Counted from the first letter of the stretch, positions 5,625-58,919 are shown. The stretch is DNA of 64,000 nucleotides from Oculina patagonica (GCF_052425735.1 NC_135765.1:6262001-6326000), one strand, 5' to 3'. Numbers and translations: made by a program. Notes: a model not told the origin generated them from the sequence alone.

Positions 5625-8600
5625 TTACATGTTCTTCATCTCTTCGTCCAAGCCAATCTTCATACCAATGGACAATGGCAGCTCTGACTTGATGTCTTCC
5701 CACAGTTCCTTGAGGGCTTTAACCGTGTTGATCTCCTTTTTGCGCAGGTCTTCCAACACAGCTTTCTTTCTTCCTTGGTCAGTCCAGTTGTACTTCTTCT
5801 GAACACGAGCGAAGAATTGCTCCACACTCTCCCCACCACTGGAAACTCCTGGGGAAAGATTGAAAAATAAGAGAGCGCTGTTAATAGCTGCGCATGCACA
5901 AGATCTTTGAGTTGTTCCAAAATATGATAAAATACGATGAGAGTTACAGAAGTCTATTGATCAACAACAAACAACAACAAAAAGCTTTATTTAACTCTAT
6001 AATTTTACAATGTTTTTCACCTCCCAAAATTAGTGTAGCTATTTGAGGCGGGACAGTTGAAAACAAACAGGCTGGTAGAAAATGCAGAAAGGACAGGCCT
6101 TCGGGCAAATGTCGGGAAGTGCAAAGTCTTGAGAGTCAATGCAAAGAATAATGAAGCCATCACAGTGAATGGTCTGGCGTTGGAAGGTGTAGAGAAGTTT
6201 ATTTATCTAGGAGCCACAGTATGTAGGCAAGGGGGCGGAGAAGAAGACATCAAGGCTAGGCTAGGGAAAGCGAGGGGAGCGTTTGTGAAGCTAAATCGAT
6301 TATGGAATTCCAGCAGTGTGTCGAGGAAGACGAAGATCAGGCTATACAAAACATTGGTCAAACCAGTTCTCATGTATGGTTGCGAAACATGGAAAATGAA
6401 CGAAGGTGATGCTAAGAAAAATTAAATCGATATGTTTCAGAACCGATGCCTGAGGAGGATAATGAAGATTAAATGGCAAGATAAGATCAGTAATAGAGAG
6501 GTACTGGAAAGGGCTAACGTGGAGAGGTTGAGTGAAGAGGTAAGAAGAAGGAGATGGCGATTTATTGGACACATCCTCAGACAACAACCTGACAATGACT
6601 GTGTTACAGCCCTGACATGGACCCCAGAGGGAAAGAGAAAGAGAGGCAGGCCAAAAACAACCTGGCGGCGCACAGTAGAAAAGGAGAGGTCCAATGCAGG
6701 GTGGCAGTCCTGGAGAGAGGTGCGCACTGCAGCGCAAGACAGGAATCGATGGAGAGCACATGTGGAGGCCCTATGCGCCAACTTGGCGCCAGGGGACAGG
6801 TGAAGGTGAGGTTTGAGGCGGGAGGTGAAAGAGAAAATGAAAACATTATATTTACACAATGACATTAAATAATCTACAATAAAGAAAAGAAAAGAATTAT
6901 AGTAATATTAACGATGATAATAATACTATTAATAATAACACTAATGATAAAAATAAAAATAATTTAAGATAAAGATTTCAGGTAGTCAGTGAGGGAATTA
7001 ATTTCAACATACTCGTCCTCAGCTAAAAGTAAATCAAACATTGTTTGGAATTGTTTTTCGGAAAATTGTCTCAGGTTTGTCTCTTAAGGCCGATGCGATA
7101 TTGTTCCAGAGTAAAGTTCTGAAACGAGAAAAAGAACGCTTTGAAATTTCCAGCTTTGCATCTCACCGGCTGATAGTAATCCCCATTTGCTGCAGATCTA
7201 ATATGTATCGGTGAACTTCGTTAGATTTTATAAAGCGAACTCGAAGAGGTAATGGTGCAGATCCATGAGATATGTCGTGCGTTAAGTTTGCGATGGTTTC
7301 AAAATAAATCATGGTTACGTGTAAAATTTAGAATTGATGATTTAACGAAAAATGGAATGTTATGACATGCCCATTTCTAAGGGTAAAACATATGAGAAGA
7401 AGTACACGTTTTTGGAGGATTAGGAGCTTGTTGATAAGACATTTGGAAGCGTGACCTCATACACATATCCCATCGGTTAGGTAGGGTAAGATCAAGGAAC
7501 GATACATCGTTAGAAGTGTCTGTGTAGGGACAGGATGTCGCAGTCTGGCTATTGATGCCATGATTATAGCCAGTAAGAAGGCTAAAAAACGTTTACCGGT
7601 TAGCATTAGGACGCACTTAGCGAATCTGATCTGTTCTCTCATTGTCTGTTCACTGATCAGTGGAAGATGCGGACTCGGCACTGAAAGGCAAAATGATTTA
7701 TAATTTTTTGGCTCACCTCCAGTCGTGACCTCCCTTTCCATTTGATTCTTCTCTCGCTGCTTTTTAATTCGAATAAACCTTTCAGCGGAGAGCAAAACAG
7801 AATCCAGGATGTCAAGAGCGGTTCGATCAACTTCGAAGGATCGCTCGTCATCCACGTGTGTGTAATTTGCAATGAAGTAGGTTCTCTCGCTGGAACTACC
7901 AGTTGCCCAGGACGCCTGGTCAAAAGCTTCATCTTTATCCTCCTTTTCTTTCAGTCTGTCAAGATAAGTAATCACCGTCACAGGAGCATAACCTGTAAAG
8001 TGAAGGAACGGTTATAAGTCACAGGAGCATAAACTGTAATGCAAGGTAAAGATTATGAGGCACAGTAGCATAATCTGTAAAGTGAAATAAAAGGTTATAA
8101 GTCAGAGGAACAAACTCTGTTAAGTCAGTTAAAGGAAGGACGGGAAGGAGGAAAGGAGAGAGGGAGGGACAAGCGATTAAAATTAAAGTAAAGCGAGGGG
8201 GGGGAAACAAAGTAAAGAGGGGGGAGGGACAGGAGGTTAAATCTCCCTCCTCCCTACTTTTTGAATTAAAATTTCTCCCTCCTTCCAATTCTGTACCTCC
8301 CCCCTCAGTAAAGAACAGTAATGAGATTAAATTATCAAATACCCCTTCATGCAGATATGCAAAAAGTTGACGGTTTTAAAAGACCAGGTCTATAATAGAG
8401 TAAACCATGAAAATCAAGCGCCCCACCCCAGAACAAAATGTTCCAACGAGTTCCCCCTAGGAACTTCAACTTTGACATTAAAGCTAAAATTAATTTGAGC
8501 TAAAAGGTTGAATTTTTTTCTGGCCCATATTGCTATTACCATCTTGTCGAAAGTGCTCTCTGATCTTCTGGAGTGTGTCCTTGTACTTGCCATCCTTCAA

Positions 8601-11600
8601 ACGTGGATCGTTTGCCTTCACAACAAAAATCACAGCGTGTGCAAATTTAGAGAGCGCTGGAGCAGTGTTTGCCGCTGCGTTCGGCTCCTGATTTGCTCCT
8701 TGCTGATCATAATTTCGGACAATTTCTTCTCCAGGACGTATCCTTTAATAGAAACAAGAAAAAAATTACTTTTAGACCTGCCAACGGCCCTAAAGCAACC
8801 CCTTGTATAACTCAGAGCTACGATGTGTTATCCTACACTTGAGTGAAAATATATACTGTGAGATTAAGGCGTCATGCCCAGGAACAAAGCAAAAGGTCTC
8901 CAGTTGTGCCCGAGCTTAATGTTTTTGCGTGTGTTCGCTTTTACGAGAATGTCGAGAGAATGGGCTCTCGTAAAAGCGTGTTCGCTTTTACGAGAGCCCA
9001 TTTTCGTAAGCAATCAGCTCTAGTTACGACACAGGCAGCCCAAGCGATGGCTTCTTTAATATAAATTTGCAATGGTTGTTGTCGGTTCGACTCAAGCGAT
9101 CGAAAAATATGCTCAATAAATCGCTGAATTTGAGATCTTTCGTTCCTAAATTACTAACCTAAGGTTGACTCCGTGTTATTGTGAGATTTGATGGGGTTTT
9201 AGGACGATTAATTCCTTACTTGCCGCTGACGCCCCCTACTAATACTTTTTCTTAATGAAGCCATCGCTTGGGCTGCCTGTGGTTACGACCACTTTATCCA
9301 GTTCTCGAGGGGGGCGCTAACGAAAGCTTCGACTGTATACTCACTTGTTCGGCTTTAGTCGTGAAAAGGGCTGTCTGTATATTCCCGGGGTATCTTATCG
9401 AACGTTCGGCAATCGAACACCAATCGTTCAATTGGGTTTCGTAATCGAACATACACCTGTAATCGAACTCACACTAAAATTTGGTGAATCGAACACAATC
9501 GAACGTTCGATTACTGACCGGTCGACAGTTCTACTCAATCCAAGGTTCAATTACCGAGCGTTTTGGCGCCAAGAGATAAATTCTTAACAAAATCGAATCA
9601 CAAACAGCTCTTGTACTCAATCCAAAGTTCAATTTCTGAACTTTCTGGAGCCAAGGGATAAATTCCAAACAAAATCGAATCGGATTACAATAATCAAACT
9701 CACAGCAAATTAGATGTTCGATTGAATTTGGTTCGATTTTGTTCGAATAGATACCCCGAACAGATTAGTCCCTAAAATTAAATAAAGATGAACTCACTCC
9801 AAAATTGTCTGCAAGTGTGGAATGTACCCGCGCAAGAAAAATCAGTTCGAGACACCACGAGAATCATTACCGAGCTACGTTATTAATAAATACTTTTTCA
9901 GGTCGACTTTCCTTTCAGACATGCAAAAAAGAGACCTCACTCAAGCGAAACGTCTGTTTTCCTTACGCTAGCCTGAACAACACACACAACATGCATTACC
10001 TTCCTGACAAAATTTTGAGGCACTCATCCAGGAGCCTTTCGTCACTCTCAAAAAATCCTCTGGTGTCCACCATCCGAATTTTTTTCTGCACGTAGTATTC
10101 CTCAAGGTTAATGGTGCCTTCCTTTCCTGTTCCTTGCGCAAAGGCGACCTGAGACTCTCCAATAGCTCGCTGTAACGTGCCTTGTTGTAAAGGTAATCAA
10201 AAAGAGAATGCCTTAATGTTGGGCGATTTTCGATTGGGTGTAGTTCCACTCCCAGGGTGGGGGCGGGGTTCCTTTTTCCTTTTGTTCACCCCAAAAAATT
10301 CCCTTGTGTTCCACTGTTCCCTAAAAGTACTTTGTCGATTTTTGTAATCCCTGATTCCTAAAATTAAATATCAGAAACACGGCTTTTGTTCCAGTGTTCC
10401 CAGCTTTATTTACCTTTTGTCGACTTGTTACCAATTATTTTATGGTCATGTTCCCTTGTTCCCTGTAAACCCTGGGGGGGGGGGGGGGGCTCAGTAATCA
10501 CTCGCCAATCACTGGACGCGAGCAAGCCAGTGCACCAGTCAAAACTCGATACAAACACATGTAGCCAACACCTCTCGTACCCAGATCTTCTTAACCCTTG
10601 GGAGAGAATATCTGGTAAAAAGCCATTTTTGCTCATGTCAAATGTGTCAGAAATTTGTTCATACGACAAGACTACGCATGCTCGTTAATTTAGAAGAATT
10701 TTTAAAAAGCTCAATGGTCGTTTTAAATAGTTCACGGAAAAGTTTTCACAAAAGAAGAAACCTGTTCTTACCCACAAAACTGGTTTTCCCTGATCCTGTT
10801 GGCCCGATCAACGCAATACGCAACAAATCGATGTCGTCCACCTCCAGATCTCGGAAAGATTCTTTCTTAATTCTAGGACAGCTCTGAAAGTCGTAATTCA
10901 TCAGGTCGCCCTTAAGTTGGAGAAATCTTTCTTCCTCCTTCTGTTTTCTTTCTCTTTCCTCCCTCTCACGTTTTTGGCGGTCTAATTCCCTTCTCTGTTC
11001 GTCGTCTTCAACCCTCGTGCGTTCTGCCACTTCACGCAACGCCTGTTGACGATCTCTTTCCATCTCGTCACGCAACGCTCTCATTCTCTGTTCATTTTCT
11101 TCTCGGGCTCTCTGTTCACCTTGAGCGCGTGCATTGGGATCGGTTCTGTCCACTTCTTCATAGGTCTTTAATTAAAGACAAGAACATTATGCCAACAATC
11201 AAATAAACGAAGGGATCGTGCTTAAAATGATTTCAAGGATTTGGAAACTGTTCCATTTAGTAAGCCAAGGGACCGGTCATTATTTAGAGGGTGGGTAAAG
11301 AAAAGGTAAAGTCTGTGTCAGAGCCAAGTGGCCCATACAGCCGGAGCTTATCCCGGTTTCCGTAGCATTAAGCGACTAGGAGTATTTCTACTCCCCCCTG
11401 GATGGGATGCTAGTCCATCGCAGGGTAACCCCCCAGCAGTAAATTCGCCGGTACCCATTTGTACACCTGGGTGGAGAGAAGCACTGTGAGAGTAAAGTGT
11501 CTTGCCCAAGAACACAACGCAGCGCCCCGGCCAGGCCTCGAACCCGGGCCGTTCGACTCGGAGTCGAGCGCGCTAACCATTAGGCTACCGCGCCTCTCAC

Positions 11601-13423
11601 AGAGGGTGGGTAGGACTGGTCCAAATTAGGGAAAGGTCAATGACTTTTATGTAGGAAAAAAGGGGGTGGGGCACATGAATTTGTACACGCATATTAGGAC
11701 GGTTTAAAGAAGTGGGTGGGTAAGGGGGGGATCAGTGAAAAATGTGCTTTACAAAAAAGAAGGGTCAGGAGAATTTGAACATAGGCTCCCTTCATTCGCA
11801 CCAGCGCCCCCCCCCCCCCGCCCTCACCTACCCACAGACTATGATTAGCCCCAATCCGATTAATACGACAAGGAAGCTAGAGTGGAAAATGTATAAAAAC
11901 TTTAAAAGTTTGGACTGAGTAATGTAGTAACCTTAAATGAACTGTAATCTAACTGGTAATCTTAATGTATGTTATGGACTGCTCAAACAATGACAAAAAA
12001 CAAAAGCCAAGAACAGGCCAAGTATGGGCCCCTGTGTTTACTTAAGATACAGATACCCCCCTCCCCCCCTCCGCCCAAGATATCAACCTATTCAGACTAT
12101 CCCCTTCCCCCAAGAAAAAATAACAAAATAAAACAAAAAAAATTAATTAAGCTAAAAAAGAGGACTTACCGTTTAGAAACACTAGCGACAATTACGACCC
12201 TCCAACAGCAAAATAGTTACCCATTGCATACCTTACCCCCCCCCCACCCCGCAAGTAGAGGATGGAATAATCGCGAAAGACTTTTAAAACTAGCTCAGTT
12301 CAGAAAATTGATGAGTTTTTAGGCAGTCTTGGAGAATTTATTTCCTTTCCAAGGATAAATACGCTAGCAATTGCAATGTATGGAAATGTAAAAACAGTTC
12401 CATTAGTGCAAACTGGTAACCAGAAACTGAAAGAGTACTCGAGCGATTTACTTCAAAATGAAACTGAATACTAAGCATTTTAAAACGAGGTTGGTATGGC
12501 TTGACAACAACCCATTAAAAAAGTAAGAAACATTCACTGAATCGAAATCTATAGCATTGCTTTTTTGTCAAACCTTTCTTATTTCTTGTGCCCGTATTTC
12601 AGTTAACACTTTTTTTAATAACAAAACTGGCAATATCGCTCTGTAAGCGCGCATCGCGTGACTTTCATTTACGTTTGATCGATGATTCGGGAGAATATTT
12701 AGCAAGAGGTATTAAAATGTTTCTGTTATTATTAATACCAGCAAGCTGTAAATTAACAAATAACTTACGAATACACTCTTTTGAAAGTCAAAAAATACAC
12801 GCTAGAGTTCAAAATAAATCAATTACAATCGCAAGTGATCGAATAAAAGCAGTAAATGTGTTAACATATTCCAGGAATTCATTACGAACTCACGTTACCC
12901 GGAAAGCCAAACAAGAGGAAAACTTTCGGTTTCATTTACCGTTTCCATTAATGTCGCCCTGTTTCTCTTATTCTTCCGTATGTAAAAGGAGATAAAAGGG
13001 ATTTGAATAACTGATTGTGTTTCTTGAGGTCGAAAATGTTAGCACAATTGACTCCTGCTTGACATAGTGATAAAATGCGAGACTGCTACCGACGTTAACC
13101 AAATTATTTGACTTTTTTTTAATAAAAAGCTCTCGTTTCGCTTTGCATTCCAGAATTTGGCTATTTGACCGATGAAGTACCTTAATTAGGCCCTTTAGAT
13201 CTAAATTTTAGTGAATAAACCGGCAAAGCAAAGTCTGAATTTCACCAGTTAAATTATAACACTTCTTTGACATGTTTCACTTTCAAGCGAAGACTCGAAT
13301 ACGCTTGCCATATTTAAACAAAATGTAACCGATTATAAGCTGAAATTAAAAAAAAAAATATTCGGATCTTTGTGTACTTACGATTTTTGGCGAACCGCCG
13401 AATATTTTTCTAAAAAAAGCCAT
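5625..13423 (-). CDS. G1: IFI44-family P-loop GTPase (no TLDc) with N-terminal coiled coil and C-terminal SAM-like domain, 439 aa
   Basis: Exons 13382-13423, 10772-11165, 10000-10180, 8540-8742, 7717-7992, 5625-5848; all GT-AG, 1320 nt open. Motifs: RIALIGPTGSGKTS (Walker A), KEGT, VDTRG, ILSGRIR, HAVIFV, VITYLD, FIANY, LDSVLLSAERFI, in the same order as IFI44 motifs (ILNGNIR, HCVAFV, LTHVD, VSNY, AADDFL, recalled). Confidence 0.88.
5962..7565 (-). mobile_element. 5'-truncated, decayed CR1/L2-like LINE in the last intron of G1
   Basis: Post-RT-like residues ARLRHPVPTQTLLTMYRSLILPYLTDGICV*...INKLLILQKR; 3' hairpin ttcacctccc/gggaggtgaa, minus-strand AATAAA at ~5986-5991 and a (TTG)n-like tail. 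Confidence 0.7.
6054..6811 (+). mobile_element. 5'-truncated RTE-clade LINE (RT C-terminus), frameshifted at ~6420
   Basis: VEKFIYLG, YKTLVKPVLMYGCETW, RRRWRFIGHILR, RGRPKTTWRRTV, AQDRNRWR motifs; AGGTGA repeat tail; 12-bp TSD TTTGAGGCGGGA at 6042-6053 and 6812-6823. Confidence 0.92.
11298..11600 (-). mobile_element. Full-length tRNA-derived SINE with TSD
   Basis: Minus-strand A box TAGCCTAATGG and B box GGTTCGAGGCC; 12-bp TSD AGAGGGTGGGTA at 11286-11297 and 11601-11612. Related pieces near 1370, 14178, 16030, 44410 and 51530. Confidence 0.88.
12645..12937. promoter_or_regulatory. Conserved intron-1 motif cluster of G1: GCATCGCGTGAC, GAS TTCCAGGAA (12869-12877), ISRE-like ACTTTCGGTTTC (12922-12933)
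   Basis: The same motifs are kept in G2 intron 1 despite indels and TE insertions around them. Confidence 0.6.
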
Positions 13424-13494
13424 TTTAGAAAAGGCTTTTTGTGTACGCCTGGAAACTTCTCGTCTGCTCTAACTTCTTGAAGCAGAATTCAAAA

Positions 13495-13543
13495 GCGGAA
13501 GTGGGTTTTCCCTGAAATCGCGTGACGTTTCTGATTCTCAGAA
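13495..13543 (-). promoter_or_regulatory. G1 proximal promoter: ETS GCGGAAGTG, kB site GGGTTTTCCC, CGTGACG, GAS TTCTCAGAA
   Basis: 70-120 nt upstream of the ATG; same order as in G2 with consensus-preserving substitutions. Confidence 0.65.
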
Positions 13544-15233: not shown

Positions 15234-18200
15234 TTACATGTTCTTCATCTCCTCTTCCAAGCCAATCTTCATGCCAATGGACAATGGCAGCTCTGACTTG
15301 ATGTCTTCCCACAGTTCCTTGAGGGCTTTAACCGTGTTGATCTCCTTTTTGCGCAGGTCTTCCAGCACAGCTTTCTTCCTTCCCTGGTCGGTCCAGTTGT
15401 ACTTCTTCTGAACACGAGCGAAGAATTGCGCCACACTTTCCCCGCCACTGGAAACTCCTGGGGAAAGATTGAAAAATAAGAGAGCAATGTTAATATCTGC
15501 GCATGCACAAGATCTTCTCGTTGATCCAAAATATGCATAGTATATGACGAGAGGTTTAGATGTCTATTAATCGTTACATAATTGGCATTAAGGTACAATC
15601 GGCGAATGTGATTGGTTCTCTCATTGCATGTCCACTAATAGAAGGCGATCGCGCGCTAGTAGCCTTTGAACAGAATGTAAATGTAAAAAAGTAAATGTTG
15701 TTTATAGTGGTCATGCACTTAGCTTTATATCTCTTCGAGATAGCTAGTTTACAGGCATGCCACTGAAACAGAGGAATGAACATAACAAGGTTAAAAATCC
15801 CAACTGGCAGGAGGCAGACCAGTTGGCTATGTACAAAGCGTGATCGAGGATTTGAACTCGGGACAACCGAGAAACAAATTCAGCTAGTGGCAGGGGCAGG
15901 TCTTGAACCGGGGACCTCCGGATTACAATACCAGCGCCCTAAACCATTCGACGTCATCATTTTCTTCTCTACTTCGCAGTGGGTTTCCATTTGAAGAGCA
16001 TTGTTCCATTATTCTGGATTCTTTGACCTTAGGTGGAGAGAAAGGGCACTATGAGAGTAAAGTGTTTCTGTCCAAGAGCACAACGCAGTGCCCCGGCGAG
16101 AGTTCGAACCCAGACCGCTCGATCCAGAGTCCAGCGCACTAACCATCAAGCCACCGCGCCTCCAATGTTGACAGTTGAATACGTAAAAAATGGCCTAGAG
16201 ACTCTCTCCCTTAGTTATGGCATTGAATTTGGGAAAAAGATTACCTCCAGCCATGGCCTCCCTTTCCATCTGATTCTTCTCTCGTTGCTTTTTAATTCGT
16301 ATAAACCTTTCAGCGGAGAGCAAAACAGAATCCAGGATGTCAAGAGCGGTTCGATCCACTTCAAAGGACTGGTCAGCATCCACGTGTGTGTAATTTGCAA
16401 TGAAGTAGGTTCTCTCGCTGGAGCTACCAGTTGCCCAGGACGCCTGATCAAAAGCTTCATCTTTATCTTCTTTGTCTTTCAGCCTGTCAAGATAAGTAAT
16501 CACCGTCACAGGAGCATAACCTGCAAAGTAAGGGAAAGATTATCAGTCACAGGGGCAAAAATTGTATTGTTATATAGCTAGAAATTTTTCCTTAGCAGCT
16601 CGCGCTAATTGGTTAATTCGAGGTCACATGAAATCTAACAATAGATGCTGTTTCCCGCCAAAAGTCTCCGAGAGGGCAACATTGCAAAATATGTGAAAAC
16701 AGAGGGCACATTGCAATTAATGTTGCCCGCGAATGTTAACCTTCGAGCGCCATTTTTTAAAGTCTTCGTCGTGCTATATAACAAAGCACTTAATGACTGA
16801 AAACCAGTTGATTTTGTTTTCCTCGAAACATTGAGATTTTCGGGAAATAAAATTAACTGTTTTTCCGAGGAATCAGTCATTAAAGGAAGGTAAAAAGAAA
16901 AAACGACCGACCGACTTAATGAACGAACAAAAGGAAGCAAGGACCGACCGACCGAACAAACGAACGATCACATGAACGACGGCGGAAATAAAAGAAAAGT
17001 AGGGAAGCCATGAAATGTAATTGAATGTAATAAGTGCGATCAAATACCCCTTCAGATATGCGATGGAGAGAAGGTTTTAACAAACCAGGACCTGGTTGTC
17101 AAAGCATAAAATTTGATTTCAGTTTTATTAAATTTTTAACGAAATTTTCTGTTTCTCTATATCTCCACAAAACATAAGCACTTTTATACAAGAGAAATTG
17201 AACCCTCGATGAACTTTTAATCTTGGGTTAGCGTTAATCTGCCCCAGGGCCGGGTTGTTCGAAGGGCGATTAACGCTAACCCAGGATTAAAAGATGATCA
17301 AGGTTTTAATTTCTCTTGTTTTAAAAGTTTTCCATAGCTAATGTTTTGTGGCGTTTGAGTTTGGTCCACGTCAAAACTGGGGGATTAAATATATTAACAG
17401 AAAACCTTAACGAAATGTTATAAAATTGAAATCAAATATCACGCTAATCCTGGATTAGCTTAATCGTGCTTTGAACAACCGGGCCCAGGTCTATACAACA
17501 GGGTAAGTCTATATAATAGGGCAACAGCTTCAGTGAAAAACGGACGGCACATCACCCTGCCCAACTACAAACGTTTGAATCATTTTCATAGGGTCTTACA
17601 CCTTGACGTACATAAAAAAGGCCTTTTAATTTGAGCTAAAGGACTGGATTTTCTTGCACCTATTGCTATTACCATCTTGTCGAAAGTGCTCTCTGATCTT
17701 CTGGAGAGTGTCCTTGTACTTGCCATCCTTCAAACGCGGATCGTTTGCCTTCACAACAAAAATCACAGCGTGTGCGTATTTAGAGAGCTCTTGAGCTCTT
17801 TTAGCCGCGGTGTTCGGCTCTCGATTTGCTCCTTGCTGGTCATAATTTCGCACGATTTCTTCTCCAGGACGAATCCTTAAAGAGAAACAAGAAAAAAATA
17901 ACTTTTCAGAACTAAATACGCCCCTGACGACAGTCCTGAAGCAACCATTTGTGTCACCTATAACTGGAATGAATTCATATGTAATAGGAGGCTAGTGTCT
18001 TGCCGAAGACAGCGTTCGTACTCTTTTGAATTCCATGACTTTTCAAAGTTTTCCATGACCTAAATCTGACCATTTTTCCTGGAAATTTCTTAAAAAATTA
18101 TCTTGATTTCGGGTACGCTTTTACCCTTTTCGATCCTCACAAAAAATTTCATTTTCCATGATTTTCCATGACCCACACTTAAATTCCATGACTTTCCAGC

Positions 18201-24778: not shown

Positions 24779-24779
<1 letters not shown>

Positions 24780-36915: not shown

Positions 36916-38071
36916 GTCACGCCACACTTGGACAAACGAGAGAGACGATTTTAGTCCTAGAAACGTCAGGAGAGTAAAAAATAATTATTTTAAAACCTGT
37001 ATGTAAATTTTAACTGTATAAGCTGTTCATTAGTTTATAAAAACAATGTTTCTTTTTTTGTTTGGGAATCGTTTAACATATGTCACTTTTTCATGTTTAC
37101 TTAGTCTGCATCGCGTGACGTCTACAGATTTACTTTCATGTGCGTGACTTATATGTAGGTTTTGCCAGATTTTCAAATCTTGCTTTTCAATAGCGTTGAA
37201 ACAAAAAATAGCTGATTAACACAACTTTGAAAAATACATTATTCTCGATAGCAGATCAATAGAGACATTAAAATTTAATAATTGCAACTTAGAAAGGCAA
37301 TTTCAACCCTGACAGTTCCGCAACTTCTAGGAATTTGCACAGCGACAGAAAAGTGTTTTCCGGAATCGTATCAAACTTATCAGTTATCAGTTGTTTGAGG
37401 GAGGATCTAATTTTCTTTCTGCTTTATATATTTTTCTCTCCGTCCCTCTGGTTTGCTATGAGAAGCACCTGGAAAGTCTCCTGAAAGTATATGAATTTAC
37501 GAAATAAAGGTCATGCGGAGGTTAATCATCATTTTAATAAAATGTTCGTATCTGTCTACGGCGTAATGGCTGTTTATTGTGCGCACTGTCGATTTAGTTT
37601 CAAATTTATTAAACTGTATTCCACACGCTTCCGTCCAGAATCAGATCATTTTGGGAAATTTAAAAGAATCGATGGCTTTTATATGGCAAACGGATACAGA
37701 AGGCGGAGGAAAGAATTTTAACAGCACTGCCCGCAGCACTGCTATCATAAAACAAATGTTATTTTATATGAGCATTAAAGTGTGCATTTAAGAAAATACA
37801 AATTGACGCCACAATTCCCTTTTGAGCGTTGCAATAACTTCATACTTCTGTCACTTACTAAAATTTAACGTTGTGTTAGTCTTTTTGTAAAAATTTCAGA
37901 TCGTCAATCGTTTCGTGACTCGGGGATTTAGCGGTACAAAAAACAAACAGTCTAGCAAATGCATATTTGCAACCAACATCAATAGATACGTTCCTGTGCA
38001 TGCTAAATTCGACAACTCAAGGCGATGCACGATCGCCATACAAGCTACCAAGTTAACAGGCAGGTACTCAC

Positions 38072-38095
38072 GTTTTTAGATTCGAAGTTTCCCAT
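38072..38095 (-). CDS. Upstream micro-exon of G3, MGNFESKN (myristoylation-type); uORF or alternative first coding exon
   Basis: ATG GGA AAC TTC GAA TCT AAA AAC|gtgagtac, homologous to G2 exon 1; ETS site CCGGAAGTG at 38172-38180 upstream. Confidence 0.72.
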
Positions 38096-45200: not shown

Positions 45201-47102
45201 TATTATAATTAAGATTCATCTATCTCTCGAATAAATTTAAACTACATGTCACTCTATATTATCCAGTTACCTTATCTGCATTCCCTAAGAAGAACTCTTT
45301 GCACTTTCTGTACTCATCCTCTAAAATTGTAGTTTTCAGTTTCAGCTCATCAAGCCCAAGCTCTTCCAAAACTTGAGATGTTGCGAGTGTTTGTTCGGCA
45401 ACTTTATTTAGATGACCGCTACTGTAATCTTGCCACAGACCTTCAAGGATTTGCAGCGAGCTGCATGTCACAGTTACCAATACACTTCCTAAGTTGTAGC
45501 TTTCAACACCGAGTCCAAGCTGCGCTTTCAAGTACTGTAGAAATACCTTTAACGACCGCTCCTTAATAACATTCCAGAAGGTAAGCTTCGGGACCTTTGG
45601 CATTGGAGGACCATGGCGATATCCTTGATGATGATAATGATGTACCTCCACCACGATGGTAATACGAACTGGTTGAGAATCTGTACAATCAAAAGAACAC
45701 ATTCTCAGTCACAATTTATTGCAAAATATCTTACATTACCTTATGAACTGATCAGATTTAAATCATTTAACCACCTTTATAAAAGAGCCCTCGGCTTCAA
45801 GATCATTTTGAACGGCGCTATGAAGCAACGGCCAAAGCTTTGTCTGCGTGCAAAAACATTCAGAAATAGCCGGGTCCTCTCGATAGAATTACGAAACTGA
45901 GATTGAGTATGAGTATGACTTTGGAATATCAATCCAGTCACTCCCAGAGCTCTCGTTTCTCCCTGTTGCTGACCGGTTGAACTATCGATGCGAGATTGGT
46001 GTGCAATTAAGCGATAATCGAAAGCATAAGCACCAAGTTTAAGAACTTGTACTCTTACTCAATCTCGTTCTCCGATCTACAGGTAAGCAAGGTCTTACAA
46101 TTGAGAGCAGTAAGAGTGCTTTAGACCCTCAAGATAAAAGGCATTTGATAGAAGTCTCAGAAAAAAGAACTTTCTTGGCCGGCAGCCTCATTGGTTAGCT
46201 CTTGGATAGTAAATAAGAAAACATCAATTCAAGATGGAAATCGCAAGCAGAGGGGTAATGACTCCATGCTGTAAGGTGACACCAAACTAACAGTGCAATC
46301 AAAGCAATAAAGATTTCGAAAGCTTACCTTGTCTTTGCTGAAGCTGTTGCAGCTGATCTCTGATATCTGTGTTAACTTGTTGGAGCTGATCTGTGACATC
46401 TACATAAACTTGTTGGAGCTGAGCTCTGATATCTGTGTTGACTTGTTGGAGTTGATTTCCTACTTGTTCTACTGCATCTTTGACTTCCATGTCGTTCTTG
46501 TACCATAACTGAAGTTCATCCACATATCTCTGTGCCTCAGTTGTTAGAGGATCACGCAGCAATTTATCAATGGACTTCATCCATTCAACTCTCTTTGCTG
46601 GACTGATTGACTCAGCAATTCGTAAGAGAGCCTCGCTGATATCTGTCCAGAAATTACCGAACGCAGAGTCCGTAATTTCCATTGTCGTGTTGTGACCGTA
46701 AATGGAATTGCGGTAGAATTTTATTCGCGCCAAATCTGCTTCAAGACTGTAGTCTGTACTGTTTGGTAAATTGTCCCAGCCGGTAGGGGGCTCTGTCAGA
46801 TTGCATATTGTTCTTAGCAATCTGAAAGTTAAGGTGATATCGAAATCGGCAGACTTGCCAAACGTACCAGGGGAAGGGTAGAGGCTATCCCACTCTGGTT
46901 TAGAAATTCTCGCTCTTCTTAATTGGGTTTGTATAGCAGGATCACCAAGCTTTAATGGCAGATCAGTGGGTGAGTGAAAAGAATCAAACATTTCTCGTAA
47001 AAGCCGGACACCTCCACACATCAAAAGTCTTGTCAGTCGCTGAAAATTTTCTTTTCCCTTCGTTGAACGAAAGGCATCTTCTGCGTCTGTTGGTGATGCC
47101 AT
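39235..47102 (-). CDS. G4: DZIP3-like HEPN + Q-rich coiled coil + TRADD-N-like + divergent IFI44-family GTPase, no SAM-like tail, ~718 aa
   Basis: Exons 46328-47102, 45271-45680, 44926-45040 (weaker acceptor), 42769-43080, 40776-41012, 39235-39542; 2157 nt open. RNSIYGH at 46692-46712; NIALFGMTGSGKSA, KEGT, YDTRGFF, ILDRIHVVLWVIKAND, VITFDD, FIANS, LKCGERSI. The 3' end could alternatively splice onward. Confidence 0.75.
40309..40757. mobile_element. MITE flanked by TTAA
   Basis: ttaaAGAGGGGGACATTGGGG...CCCCAATGTCCCCCCTTttaa. Confidence 0.7.
41163..42452. mobile_element. 1.29-kb non-autonomous Mutator-like element in a G4 intron
   Basis: TIR CAATCTCGAGCCCAGAGT...ACTCTGGGCTCGAGATTG; 9-bp TSD ATGGAAATG (41154-41162, 42453-42461). 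Confidence 0.85.
43170..43600 (+). mobile_element. tRNA-derived SINE (third family)
   Basis: ttagctcagttggtagagcgccggactg head without a complete cloverleaf, followed by a ~350-nt body. Confidence 0.65.
45271..45680 (-). other. TRADD-N-like domain exon of G4
   Basis: GSVLVTVTCSSLQILEGLWQDYSSGHLNKVAEQTL; same phase-1 start and phase-0 end as the G3 exon. Confidence 0.7.
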
Positions 47103-47837
47103 GTTAGGCCACAGTTAGACAAACGCGATTCGACGATTTTAGTCCTTAAAAAGTAAAAAGTATCAAATCATTTTGGAAAACTGTATTAAAACATTCATTA
47201 TAATTATAAGCAGTTAATGCGAATCGTTTTTAAAACATACTTGTATGTCACTTTTCCATGTCTACTTAGTCAGCGCATTGCGTGACGTTTACAGATTATT
47301 GGATTATTTACAGCGCATTGCGTGACTTATATGTAATGTAACCAGACTGAGCCAGGTTTTCAAATCTTGCTTTTCAGTAGCGTTTAACTGATTAACTCTG
47401 CTTTGAAAAGATATTTTGTCCGATAATAGATCAATAAAACTATTAAAATTTAATAATATTGCAGATAGCAAAAAAAATCAATAGAGACAGATCCTCCAGT
47501 TCTAGGAATTCGTAAAGCAACAATATATTGTTTCGCGGAATCAGCTAAATCAAACTTTTTAGTTTAAGTTGAGTCGGATGTTTGAGGGAGAATCTATTTT
47601 TTTCTGCTTCATTTTTCTCTCCTTTCCTTTTGTTTGTTATGAGAAGCACCAAGAAGTCTCCTGAAAGTATATGAATTTACTGGATCAAGTTTATGCGGAG
47701 TAATATTCTAATCATTATGCGTTAGGTAAGAGACAGCTCTGCTATCACAAAATATTATTAATGACCCGGTTTTGAGCATTGAAGTCGAAAGTACATTACA
47801 GATAATGCAATTTTACGCCGTAGTTCCCCTCTGAGCG

Positions 47838-48167
47838 CATCCTCGTAGACCCATAGGCAGTAAGTCGGGGCAAAACGAAGTAAACGGAGCAGAAACGTAG
47901 CGACGAAAGTTTTAAAGAAGAGAGACGATTTCTGCCCTGTCTACAAAAGTCAACTCTCGTTAAAGCGGACACGCTCGGGGCGTCGTTTAGTGTCCGTTAT
48001 AGCGAGAGTCCGTAATAGCGGGAGTCATTTCCAGTCAAACCTCTATCGCCGGGGTTCTGGATTTTTTTCCGTAATAGCGAGTGTCCGCAATAGCGGGGTG
48101 TCTGCAAGGCGAAAGTTGACTGTACTTCGTTTCGGCCCGACTAACTGCCACTGAGTCTCCGAGGATG
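47838..48167. mobile_element. Mutator-like MITE containing a nested mariner-like MITE (~47942-48124)
   Basis: TIR CATCCTCG...CGAGGATG, 9-bp TSD CTCTGAGCG (47829-47837, 48168-48176); empty site ttttgagcg in the G3 paralog at ~37820. Confidence 0.8.
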
Positions 48168-48430
48168 CTCTGAGCGTTGTAATAACTTAATAGATCTGAC
48201 ACCACTGAAATTTTAAGTTGTGTTAGTCTCTTTGTTAAAAAATTCAGATCGACAATCGTTTCGTGACTTTGGGATTTAGCAGTACAAAAACAAACAGTCT
48301 AGCAAAACTCCTCCACATGGATATTTGCAACCAACATCAATACGATATGTTCAAGTGCATGCAAAATTCGCCAGCTCAGGACGATGCATGATCGCCATAC
48401 AAGTTACCAAGGTAATAGCTAGGTACTCAC

Positions 48431-48454
48431 GATTTTAGATTCGCAGTTTCCCAT
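48431..48454 (-). CDS. Upstream micro-exon of G4, MGNCESKI (myristoylation, possible Cys4 palmitoylation); uORF or alternative first coding exon
   Basis: ATG GGA AAC TGC GAA TCT AAA ATC|gtgagtac; ETS CCGGAAGTG at 48541-48549 upstream. Confidence 0.72.
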
Positions 48455-49523: not shown

Positions 49524-52500
49524 TCAAACAGTTTCTTTTATTTCCAGTTCTATGATCTGCTTCAAGCCAATCGATAGTGGCAAGTCTTCCTTGACTTCTT
49601 CCCACAGTTCCTTGAGGACATTGACAGTATTGATCTCTTTTTTGCGCAGCTCCGCCAGCACAGTTTTCGTAGATCCCTGGTCAGTCAGGTGGTGCCTTTT
49701 CATTAAACGGGCGAAAAACACCTCCACAGTCTCCACTCCACTGATAGGTCCTGGGGACATGTATATTTAATTAATTGGAATATTTTAGGACCGTAAACTT
49801 GTAAGAGGCAAGACAAGGCACTTGCCTCGACTAGATTTTAACCTCAAAGTAAAAGAAACACGTCCTGCTTGATAAACACCTTATAAAAATGCAAAAAATA
49901 GTGTCTCAGAGCTTCTAGATTTCAAAATTTTCTTTCCAGCGGACCCCGCTAACGGATCGTGCCTTCGACACACGACTTTTGCCTCGCCTTTGCCAAAATT
50001 CTGGCTACGGCCCTGTATTTTGGACAACGTTCATTAGCAATGTTCGGAAATTACTAAATTATTTGTTCTAACGTTCGGCTAAACATTCATACCGACAGAT
50101 TTGACTATAAATTGCTGCGAATTGCCGGATTCACATTCTCCTTTTTGCCCCCCTCCCATCACGCCACAGTAGAGTTCTAGAAAATCAAATCGCTAAGTTT
50201 TGTTGGGCGTCCTCATTTTTCTATGAAAATAGTTAGAGAAGGCTTTTTGTTTTGTAAAAACAAACAAACATTACAAACAAACAAACGAACAAACAAACAA
50301 GAAAAAGCATTCGGCTCGGAAGGGGAGAGTTGAAGGGGAAAGACGTTTTCTTATACAGTATACACAGAAAATCAAACTACGTTACCTCCAGCCATTGCTT
50401 CTCTCTCCAACTGATTTTTCTCTCGCTGTTTACGAATTCGTATGAAGCGTTCAGCAGAGAACAAAGCAGAATCTAAGATGTCAAGAGCCGTCTGTTCCAC
50501 AGCAAAGGACGTCTTATTATCATTGTGTGTGTAGTTTTTAATAAAGTACGTTCTCTCGCCGGGGCCACCAGTTGTTAGTCGCGCCCTATTTAAAGCTTTC
50601 TCTTTGTCCTCTTCAGTTCTTAGCCTGTCTAGGTAGGTAATCACAGTCACTGGAGTGTAACCTGTTAATTAAAATAAAACGCACACCTTAGCCTTGTCAA
50701 CCCAATCCTGAACCCAACCCATCAGTAACGTTCAGCCGTACGCAATCCTGCAAAAGAAAAAAAAAGATGGCTGCCGAAACGTTTACCTAAAACACTAAAA
50801 ATGTTCATAAACACGTTCACTTGGAACCTGACATACGAAATGGTGCTAGTACTGGGACGAAATGTGTTTTTTGTGCCTACAATTTGTATTAGGTTTGCAT
50901 GTTGTTTTGGTGAAATGTACGAACACCATCGGTTTTACTTATGGTGGATATCTATAGACTAAAATCAGTAACGCAAGTTAGTTGCGTCGCTCCGTAAGAA
51001 CGCCTCGTCCCCAGGCGTCGCTCCTTGGTCGTGCGCGGTGCACTTTGTTTTGTGGGATTGATAGTGTGCCGTTCGCTTGGCGTTGTGGGACTGATGCAAA
51101 CGGGAGGGCGGCGGTTCGCACCCTAACCACCTTCCCCCGCGCTGTTTTCTCGCCTTCCGCCTGGCCAAACGGCGCCCGGGGACGAGGTAGAAACAAAAAC
51201 AAAAAAAGGATTATTTTTTATCGTTGATTTATCTAGTTATTACCATTTGTCTGAAAGTGGCCCCTGATCTTCTGAAGTGTTTCTTTGTAAGTGCCTTCCT
51301 CCAATCGAGGATCGTTTGCCTTCAAAACGAAAATCACAGCGTGTGCATATTTAGAGAACGCTGGGGGTTTTCTTGCCACGGCGACTGGCTCCCGACGTCC
51401 ATCGTCATGCTTCTTTCCAGGGTTGTCATAGTCTCTTATGACTTCTTCTCCAATGCGAATTCTTCAATAAAAAAAATAAAGAAACTCAGGTCTGAAGTAA
51501 TAAGATGTCGTTTAATTCTGGATTCTGTAGCATTAAGTACCTAGGTATATTACTATCTTCCCTGGAAAGGATAGTAGTCCATTGTAGGTGACCCTGTCCA
51601 AACTGGGCAAGGTTGTCAGATTGCTCTTACAGTTTTTACGTTCGCCGGTTCCCGTTTGTATGAGAGACCCCCATCAGAGACCCCCATTAGAGTAAGCCTG
51701 TGTTCTCACTTGGTGCCTTGACACGGTGCCCGAGTACGATTCTCGCTGGACACTTATGTGAACATACTATCTTTTCAAGTATTTACTCCATAATTCGGAC
51801 ACGGTGCCTGTGCTTGATGAGACCTTGCACTCCGGCACGTAAAGCTACTTAAGGGTACTTGGGTACTTTGGTTTTCTGTGTCTAAACACGACGCTAGTTT
51901 TTGCCGGTGCTCAGGTACCAGTGCTCGTGCACTGAGTGTGAGCACGGCCTAAGATTTTTAAAAGAGTCATCTCTAAAAACAATACAAGACCCGGTCATGA
52001 CTAAACTGAACCCAAACGAGGTAAACTGATAAAGTGCTTGAGAAAGTCAGATTTGGTAACAAAGCAATTTTGAGATATTCTTGAAATTCCCTTTTTATAA
52101 TATGAACTAAATGACGGCCACACGCGACCCTCCCACTCACTCTCACTCAAGCCCTTAGCCCTGGGTAAAGCATATAATAGGCCACTGACGACCCCCATCC
52201 TCCATCGGCTTCTGTCCTGGGCCAGCCTTTCCAGTGTGGTCCAGGTGTGGCCGCAATCGACCCTTCCACTACAATATACAAATAACTGACCCATAAAACA
52301 CATTACCTTCCCGTCATAATGTTGAGACATTCATCAAGAAGCTGTTCGTCACGCGCAAAAAATCCTCTGGTGTCCACCATTCGAATTTTTTTCTGCACGT
52401 AGTATTCTTCGAGAATAATATTGCCCTCTCCTCCTGTTCCTTGCTCAAAGGCGACCTGAGGCTCGCCGATAGCTCGCTGCAACGTGCCTAGTCAAGCCAA

Positions 52501-53967
52501 AGAAATCCAAAATTTAATTAGCAATTGTATTCTGATATAAGAAGGGCAAATACTACACTCCGTAGATACACTTTACAGTACTGCAGTTTCGCTGATTAAC
52601 CGATTGCCCCGATGTGTTCATGGTATATGGCAAGCTTAAGACAAATGGGAGACTACCTACTTTTCTACTTTCAAAGTAGGTAGTCTCCTTAGTGTGAAAG
52701 ACCCCATCCCTTGTGGTCTCCCAGGATCATGTGTGGTTAATAAATTCTCGTGTGCATGCTGTGCAGCTTGCTATGCCGGTGAAACCTAACGATAATTCAT
52801 CACACGTATAAGAGAACACCTAACAACGGACAAGGCATTGCACATTTTTAAACACCTTCCAAGCTCAGAAACATTCCACTCTGTTTTCTCACAGGCCAAT
52901 TTTAACATCATCGATCAGGCCTCCTCAAAGTTTGCACGCAAGATCAAATTAAAGAAGCTCTTCTGAATCAAATCCGTTGGCTAAAACCAACACTTAACGC
53001 ACAAGCTCATCACGTTAATTTCAAACTTTCTGTTTAGTTTACTTATTGTTACTGTTCTAATTATTTCTATTATTATTGTAATATTCTTTTCTGTTTTTTC
53101 ATTTATTGTAACCTTGTTAAAATCACACTGGACATAGCAGATGGTTTTGCCGAAACATGTTTGCAAAACTCAAAGATGACGACTACCTTATAACATTGTA
53201 AAAGTACGAACGGGAATAAGATCTTCCCACTATCTTATATTTCTTTTGACTCTTTCGTTTTTATACACGATTTATTTCATATATTCATCATTCCATAGCA
53301 AACAAAGCTGTAGTTCGGGAGACCATTTTGTAGGGCCAAGAAAAAAGTTCAAGTCATAACTTAATTAGAGAGTTGTATGCGCCTAACAACGCTAATCAAA
53401 TCGTAAATAAACAGAGGTTTAAGGTGTGCTTCCTCTTCCTCAATGATTTACATGATATGCAACTGATAATGCCCGTAATGTAGCTATAATGCCCGTGATG
53501 TAGCTATATATAGCGTTTTACAGTCGACCAATGAGCACAAAGGAAATTTGACTCATAAAATGCAAAAACCTGTTCTTACCCACAAAACTGGTTTTTCCCG
53601 AACCTGTTGGTCCAATTAACGCAATGCGCACCAAATCAACGTCATCCACCTCCAAATCACGAAAAGCTTCTTTCTTAATTCTGGGGCACTTCTGAAAGTC
53701 GTAGTTCATCAGCTCGCTTTTAAGTTTGAGAAATCGTTCTTCTTCCTTTTGTTGTCTTTCTTTTTCCTCTCTTTCCCGTCTTTGGTGATCTAATTTTCTT
53801 CTTTCTTCCTCGTCTTCAAGTTTTGCGCTTGTTTCCGCGTCACGTAACGCTTGTTGACGCTGTTTCTCCATCTCGTCAAGCAGTTCTCTCATCTTCCCTT
53901 CATTTTCTTCTTGGGCTTTCCGCTGACCTTGCTCACTCGCTGCGGAATCTTCGCTTCCTGAATACCA
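49524..53967 (-). CDS. G5: coiled coil + IFI44-family GTPase + SAM-like domain (429 aa from these exons; start lies further upstream)
   Basis: Exons 53580-53967, 52307-52487, 51244-51461, 50386-50661, 49524-49750; same intron positions as G1/G2, 1290 nt open. GPTGSGKTS, DTRG, HAVIFV, VITYLD, FIKNY. Confidence 0.85.
52130..52250 (-). mobile_element. RTE LINE 3'-terminal fragment
   Basis: WTTLERLAQDRSRWR motif followed by a GAGT-repeat tail. Confidence 0.65.
52710..53180 (+). mobile_element. Decayed Penelope-like element (GIY-YIG endonuclease remnant)
   Basis: Translates with stops and shifts as VVNKFSCACCAACYAGET..TRIREHL..HIFKHL..FNIID..KEAL..KPTLN. Confidence 0.7.
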
Positions 53968-54814: not shown

Positions 54815-54978
54815 AAGTAATAGTAGTAGTAGAAGGAGGAGGAGGAGGAGGAGGAGGAGGAGGAGGAGGAGAAGAAGAAGGACGAGGAGCGGTAGCGGCA
54901 GTGGCAGCGGCAATAGTAGTAGCAGCAACAGCATCAGTAGCAGCAGCAGTAGCGGCAGTGGCACTGGCAGAAGTAGTA
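54815..54978. repeat. Compound (AGT)(GGA)(GCA) microsatellite
   Basis: Directly visible trinucleotide runs. Confidence 0.9.
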
Positions 54979-55983: not shown

Positions 55984-55999
55984 TAATAATAATAATAAC

Positions 56000-56068
<69 letters not shown>

Positions 56069-56076
56069 AATAATAA
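55984..56076. repeat. (AAT)n(GAT)n microsatellite
   Basis: Directly visible. Confidence 0.95.
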
Positions 56077-56341
56077 CAGGGAAAGTAAAGCTTCAGAAAG
56101 GCCTCCTGAGAGGAAAAACAAACTCGTGAATTCTTCACATGGGAAATACAAATTTGTACATTTAATGAAGCTTAGATGCAAATTTGTGGTGCATACCCAG
56201 AACGCCATGCAGTCTTGCCATTTAGCTTTAAGCTTTGACCCGACAACGTTTATTGAAATATATACATATTTACATATATACATTATAATACATTTTACAT
56301 ATAAATAGTAAAGTAATAAAGACTAATCTACAAATGATTTA

Positions 56342-57372: not shown

Positions 57373-57719
57373 TAAAATATAATTTATCTAAGAATTAATA
57401 AAATATTTATAAATATGTAAAATATCCTACGATATAGTAAAATGATGAATATGATTATAATAAAGATGAGATGTTTAACATGACACGTGCATGGGACAAT
57501 CGAATCGAACCCATGGCCTCCCAGATAGGACTTCAAGAAATACTTATATAAAGACTTCACTTCAGAATTTCTAAACTAGAGCTACTCTTAATTTCATTGG
57601 GAAGCGAATTCCAAAACCTAGTGGCGGATACTTGAAAAGTCCTAGCACCTTCTGATTCTCTTTTATTTGTTTATATAATAAGAGAGTAGATTAACTATAG
57701 AAATTACATTAGCACCCAC

Positions 57720-58919
57720 ATTCTCCACATATTTGGTTTCAACCTCTTCCACATAGTCAAACACACATTTCAGCTTATTGGAGTCCATAAATGCACTCTG
57801 GTCAGCATCTTTCCACTGTTACGATTAAAAGGTGAAAAATACAGAAAAATTGTTAATGACCAAGAAACTCCCTCAGTTCTTTCTTTTGTTTATTTGGACC
57901 AAGATGATTAAGTCAATAGAGGTTGCGAAAAACTTTCCTAAACTCAAAATTTGTTATTGATACAATTAATTAATAACTGGACCTTGTGTTGTACAATTAA
58001 AAGACTAATTGCACTCATTATCTCAAATTGAAATTACTTGCCTGATTACTCCCCGGATTGTAATCCACTCAATACAATTATATTTGTACTATTGCTAATT
58101 ACCATAAGATTTATGAAAAAGATCTTGAGATGCATTTAATAAATGATTTTTATAACCCATTGGCGCCTGTGCCAGCCAAAACTGGCCCTGACGAACTTTT
58201 CCCTTTATTCCACTTCTGATGTCATCATCTTTGACCAAAAAAGGCATCACTTACTGAATACTCAATCTCTGCAGGAGGAAAAGGTTATTCCAATGATACT
58301 CAGATTAGAGTGACTGGGTCAATTGAGCTTGAAATGTACACAAAAAAAGTCTTAGAAATTTGAGTGAAAAACTCGTACGAAATTTGCCTCAACGACCCTT
58401 GGCTCCTCAATGGCAAGAATTTCCCGTTTGGGTGATGCTTCCATAGAAATTCTTGAACTGCAAGCAAGCCTAGTGGAAGGCCAACAACTGCAGCAAAAAG
58501 ATGAAAAAAGGAAAAGCGACGAAAAATAGAAAAACAAAAAGCCCGAAGTGGTAAGGCACTTACTCCTCCAAAAACTCAAAGTTTTTATTTGTGCGCATGC
58601 TTGAAGAAAAATGCCATAAAATGCAATGCTTGTGGAAAGAAAGGCATACTTTCATGTTGAAAATGCCGTTTCAAGTAATCCGGAACAGATTTAGCTCGTC
58701 TGACCAGAAAATGTCAAAAATGTCCAAAAAAATAACATAACTTTGCATAGTAGTACTGGTAGGGTTTGCAGCACTAGAATTCTTGCAGTGTAACACATTT
58801 TAAGCCATCACATACCAATGTTTCATGATCAACTTCTCCTTCTGGTGCAAACATTGTCTGGATCATGAATTTGTGTATGTTGTTTTCCTTTGGATCATAC
58901 TCAAATGGCTGCAACATCA
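57720..58919 (-). CDS. Two exons encoding the C-terminal half of a VAP-type MSP domain (58816-58919, 57720-57815); candidate 5' exons of G5 or a VAP gene relic
   Basis: [34 protein letters not shown] | [32 protein letters not shown] aligns with VAPA/B [26 protein letters not shown]...WKEAKPEDLMDSKLRCVFE (recalled); clean AG/GT ends; too short to appear in the ORF track. Confidence 0.78.

Follow-up and report, generated by a model that had tools for sequence, protein, structure and literature searches.

A tandem array of TLDc-less, IFI44-like GTPase genes in the coral Oculina patagonica, probably diversified by ordinary exon shuffling

Interferon induces few human genes as strongly as IFI44 and IFI44L, whose biochemistry is poorly understood. 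The vertebrate proteins combine a TLDc domain with a GTPase domain. The GIMAP/AIG1 (IAN) family resembles the genes described here in its septin/GIMAP-like fold region, its tandem arrays and its immune roles, and GIMAPs often carry helical or membrane-anchoring extensions. In marine invertebrates, lineage-specific expansions of TRADD-N genes have been described in which HEPN/TRADD-N is fused to variable immune partners including GTPases; in cnidarians these genes are strongly expanded and architecturally labile (Kaur, Iyer, Burroughs, Aravind 2021, PMC8195603). The present analysis concerns 64 000 nucleotides (the window) of Oculina patagonica chromosome CM126642.1 (GCA_052425735.1; window base 1 is record base 6262001), which carry five paralogous GTPase genes, A to E, head to tail on the minus strand. 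Taken as a whole, the locus is likely to be a tandem array, specific to its lineage, of genes from an uncharacterised family of animal GTPases with the IFI44 fold and no TLDc domain, diversified by ordinary mechanisms.

Exons were identified by comparing minus-strand stop-to-stop open frames by blastp and by enumerating frame-keeping GT..AG pairs; coordinates of all genes and exons are window positions on the minus strand. Exon translations of the five genes were mutually similar (blastp expectation value, E, 1e-20 to 1e-77). Four internal splice junctions are common to A, B, C and E at identical codon positions and phases: ...SFVG|TLQRA (phase 1), ...SGR|IRPGE (phase 2), ...(Q/K)(D/E/N)|GY(A/T)PVT (phase 1) and ...(T/A)G(G)|..SG.E(S/T)V (phase 1). 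Gene A (5625..13423; 439 residues; coding exons 13423-13382, 11165-10772, 10180-10000, 8742-8540, 7992-7717 and 5848-5625) was modelled from splice sites, and the deposited annotation places a 439-residue product at exactly these coordinates. Gene B (15234..22974; 433 residues; coding exons 22974-22951, 20482-20089, 19054-18874, 17875-17673, 16520-16245 and 15457-15234) is identical when spliced to P0158 (ACROYT_G027428), and gene C (25944..38095; 720 residues; body exons 30232-30058, 29817-29634, 28715-28516, 27942-27658 and 26170-25944) to P0190 (ACROYT_G027429). Gene D (39235..48454; 751 residues; GTPase exons 43080-42769, 41012-40776 and 39542-39235), modelled with the help of RNA contigs, has the same length and the same 3′ end and stop codon as an annotated 751-residue product. 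For gene E, a body of 429 codons was obtained by the splice model (49524..53967; exons 53967-53580, 52487-52307, 51461-51244, 50661-50386 and 49750-49524); none of the searches made brought up an annotated product of this gene. Because the annotation independently matches models A to D (four of the five genes), the array is real, and the five head-to-tail genes named in a preliminary description of this DNA, made from the sequence alone, are borne out.

The P-loop motif GxxxxGK[ST] (G1) and DTRG (G3) are present in all five genes, and G4 takes the form T-x-x-D (TYLD, TCLD or TFDD); A, B and D keep the switch-I Thr, which is replaced by Ser in C and by Asn in E. With G1, switch-I Thr, G3 and G4 counted together, the cores are assigned to the P-loop GTPases, and activity is predicted from these motifs. 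Pfam gave weak generic matches to the cores (MMR_HSR1, RsgA, AIG1, Septin, IIGP). The structure of gene B was predicted with AlphaFold (AF2) from a 37-sequence family alignment (predicted local distance difference test, pLDDT, 80.9); in this model a single helix of about 80 residues, rich in charged residues, spans positions 18-97, the G domain roughly 100-360 and a helical bundle 368-432. The bundle (pLDDT about 80-85) is encoded by the last exon of A, B, C and E (5625-5848, 15234-15457, 25944-26170 and 49524-49750), comprises about 70 residues without a Pfam match, and is absent from D.

When the gene B model was compared by Foldseek with the Swiss-Prot models, ranks 1-5 were human, chimpanzee and mouse IFI44/IFI44L (E 2e-13 to 3e-12), followed by a Dictyostelium vWA-GTPase (1e-10) and then by plant IAN/GIMAP-type proteins, EngB and septins at about 1e-7 (IAN/GIMAP 7e-8 or weaker). 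Residues 84-360 of B align by fold to IFI44 162-442 with E about 1e-13 at a sequence identity of 17-18 %. Among AlphaFold DB clusters, two members of the present family were followed by mostly IFI44-like names (fish, scallop, oyster, protists), with IFI44-like at ranks 3, 4, 12, 20 and 26 and GIMAP first at rank 27; the ESM Atlas structural neighbours include IFI44 clusters with TLD and G domains. No TLDc/TLD match was found in P0158, P0190 or 20 scanned relatives (E up to 0.001). The core is thus predicted to be an IFI44-like GTPase by fold and, since TLDc is absent, not an IFI44 orthologue; both the IFI44-type core and the lack of TLDc had been proposed in the preliminary description. The likeness to vertebrate IFI44/IFI44L lies in the G domain and C-terminal helices, which are the best fold match, and in the induction of relatives of the coral genes by antiviral stimuli. 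Where the vertebrate proteins have TLDc, however, the coral genes have a myristoylation-type leader, a long charged helix and an additional C-terminal bundle.

Several of these comparisons bear on the alternative that the family consists of GIMAP/AIG1- or septin-type GTPases mislabelled as IFI44-like. Among solved structures GIMAP2 and GIMAP7 were the best matches (E 4e-7), the Pfam matches were the weak ones to MMR_HSR1, AIG1, Septin or IIGP, one Nematostella member has the UniProt label of a septin-type G domain, and AIG and GBP GTPases are listed as TRADD-N partners in the survey cited above (Kaur et al. 2021, PMC8195603). The ranking of solved structures says little, however, as no IFI44 chain was among the matches listed; where IFI44 models are present, IFI44 outranks GIMAP/IAN by about five orders of magnitude in E value (1e-13 against 1e-7). 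The AIG1 Pfam threshold was not reached, the sole match (23.4 bits against a cutoff of 27) being to the G1-G3 exon of D, with none on P0158; G4 of the coral proteins is T-x-x-D, and the NCBI name of the Montipora orthologue is IFI44-like. A GIMAP or septin identity is accordingly judged very unlikely, and the placement with the IFI44 fold is retained.

Full-length relatives were found in many scleractinians, Nematostella, amphioxus and hemichordates, with one in the amoebozoan Pelomyxa; most are named "uncharacterized". The exon-profile search (1.84 billion cluster representatives) gave 166 proteins with no vertebrate IFI44 among them and no TLDc in the 20 scanned, and searches by RefSeq accession or topic returned no literature description of this TLDc-less IFI44-like invertebrate family. 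Some relatives combine a G domain of this family with TIR, with a PARP catalytic domain or with SH3-SH2-tyrosine kinase (P0066, P0126/P0132 and P0125, from amphioxus, a metagenome and Ptychodera); the kinase fusion may stem from two gene models merged into one.

At the N-terminus, almost every full-length member from animals has MG-x-x-x-S/T-K; MGxxxS/T is the start in relatives from Pocillopora, Porites, Acropora, Montipora, Nematostella, Branchiostoma, Ptychodera and Glandiceps. The first coding exon of B (22951..22974) reads MGNGDSKI, an N-myristoylation consensus (MGxxxS), and ends at a phase-0 donor (GTGAGT); MGGNESKI|NYETVDR of Pocillopora corresponds to the junction of B exons 1 and 2. 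Because nearly all animal relatives start in this way and the Pocillopora junction matches that of B, MGxxxSKI is taken as the ancestral first exon of the family and not as one module among several. Gene B represents the ancestral layout, with a myristoylation-type leader, the long charged helix, the GTPase and the C-terminal helical bundle. The myristoyl leader ascribed to B in the preliminary description is present.

The M-G-x-x-x-S/T pattern is found in B (MGNGDS) and in relic exons of C and D (MGNFES and MGNCES) and is lacking in A, which begins with MAFF. The leader of A is MAFFRKIFGGSPKI. This basic-aromatic sequence had been taken for a module in its own right; the sequence exists, but the promoter and exon-1 regions of A and B can be aligned, the position of the old ATG is ATA in A, and an in-frame ATG upstream gives MAFFRKIFGGSPKI. 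The leader of A is therefore the ancestral exon itself, with the start codon shifted upstream and the myristoylation glycine lost.

In C and D the front of the protein is of another kind. The HEPN exon of C (36956-36213, AUG 36915) matched Pfam HEPN_DZIP3 with E 2e-39 (5e-39 for the full C model) and that of D (46328..47144, AUG 47102) with 7.3e-40, at 133-137 bits against a cutoff of 27; in the alignment the HEPN R-x5-H motif reads RNSVYGH in C and RNSIYGH in D, where it is followed by a Q-rich coiled coil. The next exon of C (30481..30869) matched TRADD-like_N with E 3.2e-7 (30.5 bits against a cutoff of 23.7; 28.7 bits in the full C model), the match covering only profile positions 30-60 of 69. 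Its counterpart in D (45271..45680) is 60 % identical to it and has a precomputed TRADD-like_N hit that is marked weak. An Atlas cluster that combines HEPN_DZIP3 with TRADD-like_N has 242 members. The HEPN and TRADD-N-like domains proposed for C and D are thus confirmed by Pfam; as simple alternatives to the other leaders they do not stand, because in both genes a mini-exon of myristoyl type still precedes the HEPN exon.

When the sequence was scanned for ATGGG mini-exons with a phase-0 donor behind them, exactly three came up, namely exon 1 of B, 38095-38072 in C and 48454-48431 in D. The C mini-exon (38072..38095) encodes MGNFESKN; spliced to the HEPN exon it runs into GAC TAA and gives an upstream open reading frame (uORF) of nine codons, and spliced to 30232 it would be in frame. 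The D mini-exon (48431..48454) encodes MGNCESKI, and its RNA joint to 47144, seen in runs X1, X2 and X3, gives the uORF MGNCESKID-stop; leader and HEPN exon are read in different frames, and translation of the long protein begins at a separate AUG, at 47102. This splice of leader to HEPN was seen in D RNA and in the mRNA of another coral, not in C itself. The protein of the other coral, P0192, is the orthologue of C (60 % identical over its full length), and in its transcript contigs a decayed leader, MGNIGV-stop, is spliced to GACTAAAG upstream of the HEPN AUG. Because the mRNA of this coral has the same leader-to-HEPN arrangement, insertion of the HEPN–TRADD-N cassette is placed before the split of the two corals: the cassette had landed in intron 1 by then, and the old first exon survives as a 5′ untranslated exon bearing a uORF.

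Contigs from runs X1-X3 also hold the further joints of D: after 48431>47144 (leader to HEPN exon), 46328>45680 joins the HEPN to the TRADD-N exon, 45271>45040 the TRADD-N exon to a first linker exon (45040-44926), 44926>44230 this to a second linker exon (44230-44132), and 44132>43080 the second linker to the GTPase exon. The two junctions that follow, between the GTPase exons of D, are predicted and not derived from RNA. The linker exons are rich in lysine and glutamate, and the exon carrying G1-G3 is entered at 43080 in phase 1. The junctions expected in transcripts were hence recovered for the 5′ part of D, with two linker exons and a phase-1 entry into the GTPase that the preliminary description did not have. 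Contig depth at 47801-48200, 43201-43400 and 44601-45000 was hundreds to thousands of times that of the D exons, with many loose ends; these segments in D introns are probably transcribed repeats or transposable elements.

Retention of the leader raises the question of a two-way splice switch in C and D, with one form joined to HEPN and bearing the uORF and the other a myristoylated, HEPN-less GTPase. A direct splice of the leader to 30232 in C or to 45040 in D is frame-compatible, and both leaders keep an intact MGNxES; one locus would then yield a membrane-tethered regulator as well as an RNase-armed effector without a lipid anchor. No joint that skips HEPN was seen in the D contigs, and the leader of the other coral is frameshifted; a switch of this kind has a slim chance of being correct, and the leader is read as a relic.

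The two cassette-bearing genes differ strongly downstream of the cassette. In C the TRADD-N donor at 30481 (phase 0) joins the phase-0 acceptor at 30232, which falls within a stretch that A, B and E have as one undivided body exon; C therefore lacks the long charged helix (coiled coil). In D, G1-G3 lie in one exon and there is no C-terminal bundle. C and D share 75 % identity in the HEPN–TRADD-N part against 33 % in the G domain, and the D GTPase, with 33-35 % identity to the other four, belongs to a separate subfamily. DNA homology between C and D starts upstream of the leader exon (72-81 % identity) and stops at the TRADD-N donor; in D it ends exactly at this phase-0 donor. In a maximum-likelihood tree of the family (midpoint root, no outgroup GTPases), D grouped with a stand-alone 309-residue coral protein, P0048, and a Nematostella gene (support 100/99), and C, placed in the clade of coral sequences with a leader, paired with P0192, which also has HEPN (100/100); A and B were sisters, and the companions of E were P0167 and a Pocillopora protein. 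The idea that D is a straightforward tandem duplicate of C was rejected on account of the 33 % identity of the G domains and the different exon structures. D is instead a chimera, with the 5′ block of C grafted onto a different GTPase subfamily by way of two linker exons.

Architectures of HEPN/TRADD-N with a GTPase are already known, and C and D share with the TRADD-N expansions a constant HEPN/TRADD-N module on a GTPase partner. They differ in that the partners listed in the relevant part of the survey are AIG and GBP and not IFI44-like (PMC8195603), and in that the coral genes keep a trace of the fusion (relic uORF, donor breakpoint). What is new is the IFI44-like, TLDc-less, leader-bearing partner and the preserved fusion scar.

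In the preliminary description the phase-0 first intron was regarded as a reused socket, with each paralog independently receiving its own localisation or effector module there, much as NLRs carry integrated domains. In A, B, C and E the acceptor of the body exon is indeed phase 0, and so are the donors of the leader and TRADD-N exons; intron 1 is where the cassette landed, and the same cassette is found on two GTPase bodies in the window. The phase-0 junction claimed for every gene, however, fails in D, which reaches its G domain in phase 1 through two linker exons. Against a socket also stand the leader of A, which is the same exon mutated, the HEPN exon, whose joint to the leader breaks the frame and which has an AUG of its own, the acceptor of C, which is a new site inside an old exon, and the doubtful link between E and the major sperm protein (MSP)-like exons discussed below. 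Roughly half of animal introns are in phase 0. Because the five junctions go back to about two independent events (the ancestral phase-0 intron of A, B and E, and the phase-0 TRADD-N donor of C and D), this background leaves the phase pattern without statistical support. A socket is unlikely, and this reading was supported in part only; the swapping of N-terminal parts as a means of diversifying the array was upheld. The process is ordinary exon shuffling by intronic recombination, in which the cassette entered intron 1 once and the 5′ block was re-used by segmental duplication.

The following course of events is proposed. The ancestor, similar to B, would have been a membrane-tethered, self-associating GTPase switch of an antiviral programme, self-association being attributed to the helix. 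In A, the myristoylation glycine would have been lost through a start-codon shift in the same exon. A HEPN–coiled-coil–TRADD-N cassette would have entered intron 1 of the C ancestor together with its own segment of 5′ untranslated region and AUG; the old leader would have become a 5′ untranslated exon with a short uORF, and pairing of the cassette donor with a new phase-0 acceptor would have removed the coiled coil. Thereafter, the 5′ block of C, from upstream of the leader to the TRADD-N donor, would have been duplicated onto a GTPase of the other subfamily, which gave D by way of the two linkers, and the E lineage probably lost its leader. In C and D, GTP-dependent assembly may gate the HEPN RNase through the TRADD-N adaptor, following the logic put forward for TRADD-N proteins and for GTPase-switch conflict systems (PMC8195603).

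Several points weigh against this reading. The affinity to IFI44 is drawn from fold ranking and database names (Montipora 'IFI44-like' at NCBI, Pelomyxa 'IFI44') and not from a phylogeny that covers IFI44 as well as GIMAP, septin, IRG and GBP; a word-indexed search with the family-alignment profile gave 84 matches, and vertebrate IFI44 was not among them. Splice support from RNA covers the 5′ half of D, and no start is assigned to E. Myristoylation, GTPase activity and HEPN RNase activity are predicted from motifs, and the order of events (C first, then D) is suggested by the lack of cassette-bearing D-type relatives among the hits. Finally, the induction data are from Nematostella and Stylophora, the Oculina data being the D exons in RNA contigs.

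If the reading holds, the analysis defines a TLDc-less, lipid-anchor-type branch of the IFI44 GTPase fold in cnidarians, amphioxus and hemichordates, and the coral array keeps a base-resolution record of an RNase/adaptor cassette being spliced onto one GTPase and then copied onto a second. The architectural churn that has been described for TRADD-N proteins would thereby gain a concrete mechanism. Comparison of B with C, and of C with and without the cassette, would provide simple constructs for studying gating of a HEPN nuclease by a GTPase.

Published data place the branch among the top markers of antiviral immune cells in cnidarians, mostly as genes without a name. In Nematostella, XM_001637235.3, labelled "IFI44, Septin/", ranks with the strongest markers of the immune cluster activated by poly(I:C) (log2 fold change 4.5-4.8; PMC13319465). 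OrthoFinder placed it in orthogroup OG0000785 with Stylophora XP_022800896, XP_022800901, XP_022800902 and XP_022804665 (PMC13319465), of which XP_022800902 is P0171 and XP_022804665 is P0240, both relatives of the array. XP_022800896 was raised after 2′3′-cGAMP (log2 fold change 1.3, adjusted p 6e-8; PMC13319465). A second, unnamed top marker, XM_001624274.3, is probably P0075, judging from the fixed offset of 50 between XM and XP accessions alone. Its Stylophora orthologues carry accession numbers next to those of the first set, and members of two subfamilies of the GTPase family are accession neighbours there, XP_022800891 beside 896-902 and XP_022804660 beside 665 (OG0000785, OG0000788; PMC13319465). 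Mixed tandem arrays are suggested in Stylophora also, and both subfamilies are cGAMP-induced there. An antiviral role of the family is likely; the immune role that had been put forward for the array is plausible in view of the poly(I:C)- and cGAMP-induced orthogroup relatives.

The regions that precede the four leader exons (A to D) contain nine TTCNNNGAA palindromes (STAT/GAS-type) in 4 x 430 nucleotides, against about 1.1 expected. They are paired in the promoter block of A (13489..13543); in the counterpart of B (23062-23125) one palindrome overlaps a kappaB-type GGGAAGTCCC, and further TTCNNNGAA sites lie at 38434-38443 and 48822-48831 upstream of the C and D leaders. A block of 31 nucleotides is common to the promoters of A and B only.

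The body of E is open from a phase-0 acceptor at 53967 that is homologous to the acceptors of A and B, and its first in-frame Met is codon 26 (MRELLDEMEKQ). P0163, an E-type relative from Pocillopora, starts at the equivalent Met. Neither a leader exon nor an A/B-type promoter block was found for E in pattern and blastn searches, and none of the 20 larger open frames scanned on the 5′ side of A, B and E gave a Pfam match. The contig L004, which carries P0167, was rejected as a source for the 5′ end of E: it starts 50 nucleotides upstream in an apparent intron tail, and its TTG 'start' is that of a bacterial gene caller.

Upstream of E, two MSP-like exons lie within 57708..58919 (58917-58816, with an acceptor AG just upstream, and 57815-57708 or 57815-57720), both shorter than the 60-residue cutoff of the first open-frame pass. 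They encode the C-terminal part of a VAP-type MSP domain; the Pfam Motile_Sperm match had E 2.8e-4 and 21.1 bits against a cutoff of 25.9, over positions 66-97 of 109. A complete MSP beta-sandwich was not found, the N-terminal half being absent from 58900-64000. The half-MSP front ascribed to E thus exists as exons, but no link to E and no relative with this arrangement were found. A fusion of the MSP half with the GTPase, reading from the ATG at 58917 through both MSP-like exons into 53967, would have three phase-0 boundaries, usable splice sites and a continuously open frame; in the E body exon, codon 26 is the first in-frame ATG after the upstream stop, and in some runs up to 36 % of the words sampled from 53500-59000 occur in RNA contigs. 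Such a fusion is nevertheless rather doubtful: an acceptor AG stands right before the ATG of the MSP exon, as in an internal VAP exon, and about 40 % of a beta-sandwich is unlikely to fold alone. The residues of the MSP exons nevertheless look well conserved relative to VAP, which would fit a real VAP-type gene or a recent fragment. No relative joins MSP to this GTPase, the E-like sixth copy described below has no MSP block upstream, and the Pocillopora E-type model begins at the internal Met.

Between E and the MSP-like exons, long simple repeats at 54780-56100 read poly-Ser, poly-Leu, poly-Ile or poly-Pro by frame, and an inverted repeat pair lies at 56289-56786 (plus strand) and 56927-57383 (minus strand); these repeats look like repeat or transposon debris.

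A sixth copy, P0199 (ACROYT_G027435; L002:8956-13000), which is E-like and on the same strand, was located on CM126642.1 at about 6.4028-6.4068 Mb, roughly 77 kb past the high end of the window. It is 80-89 % identical to E, but an in-frame stop interrupts it after NYDF, its C-terminus is frameshifted, and the annotation splits it into three small genes; the copy is a pseudogene, a decaying member of the same array.

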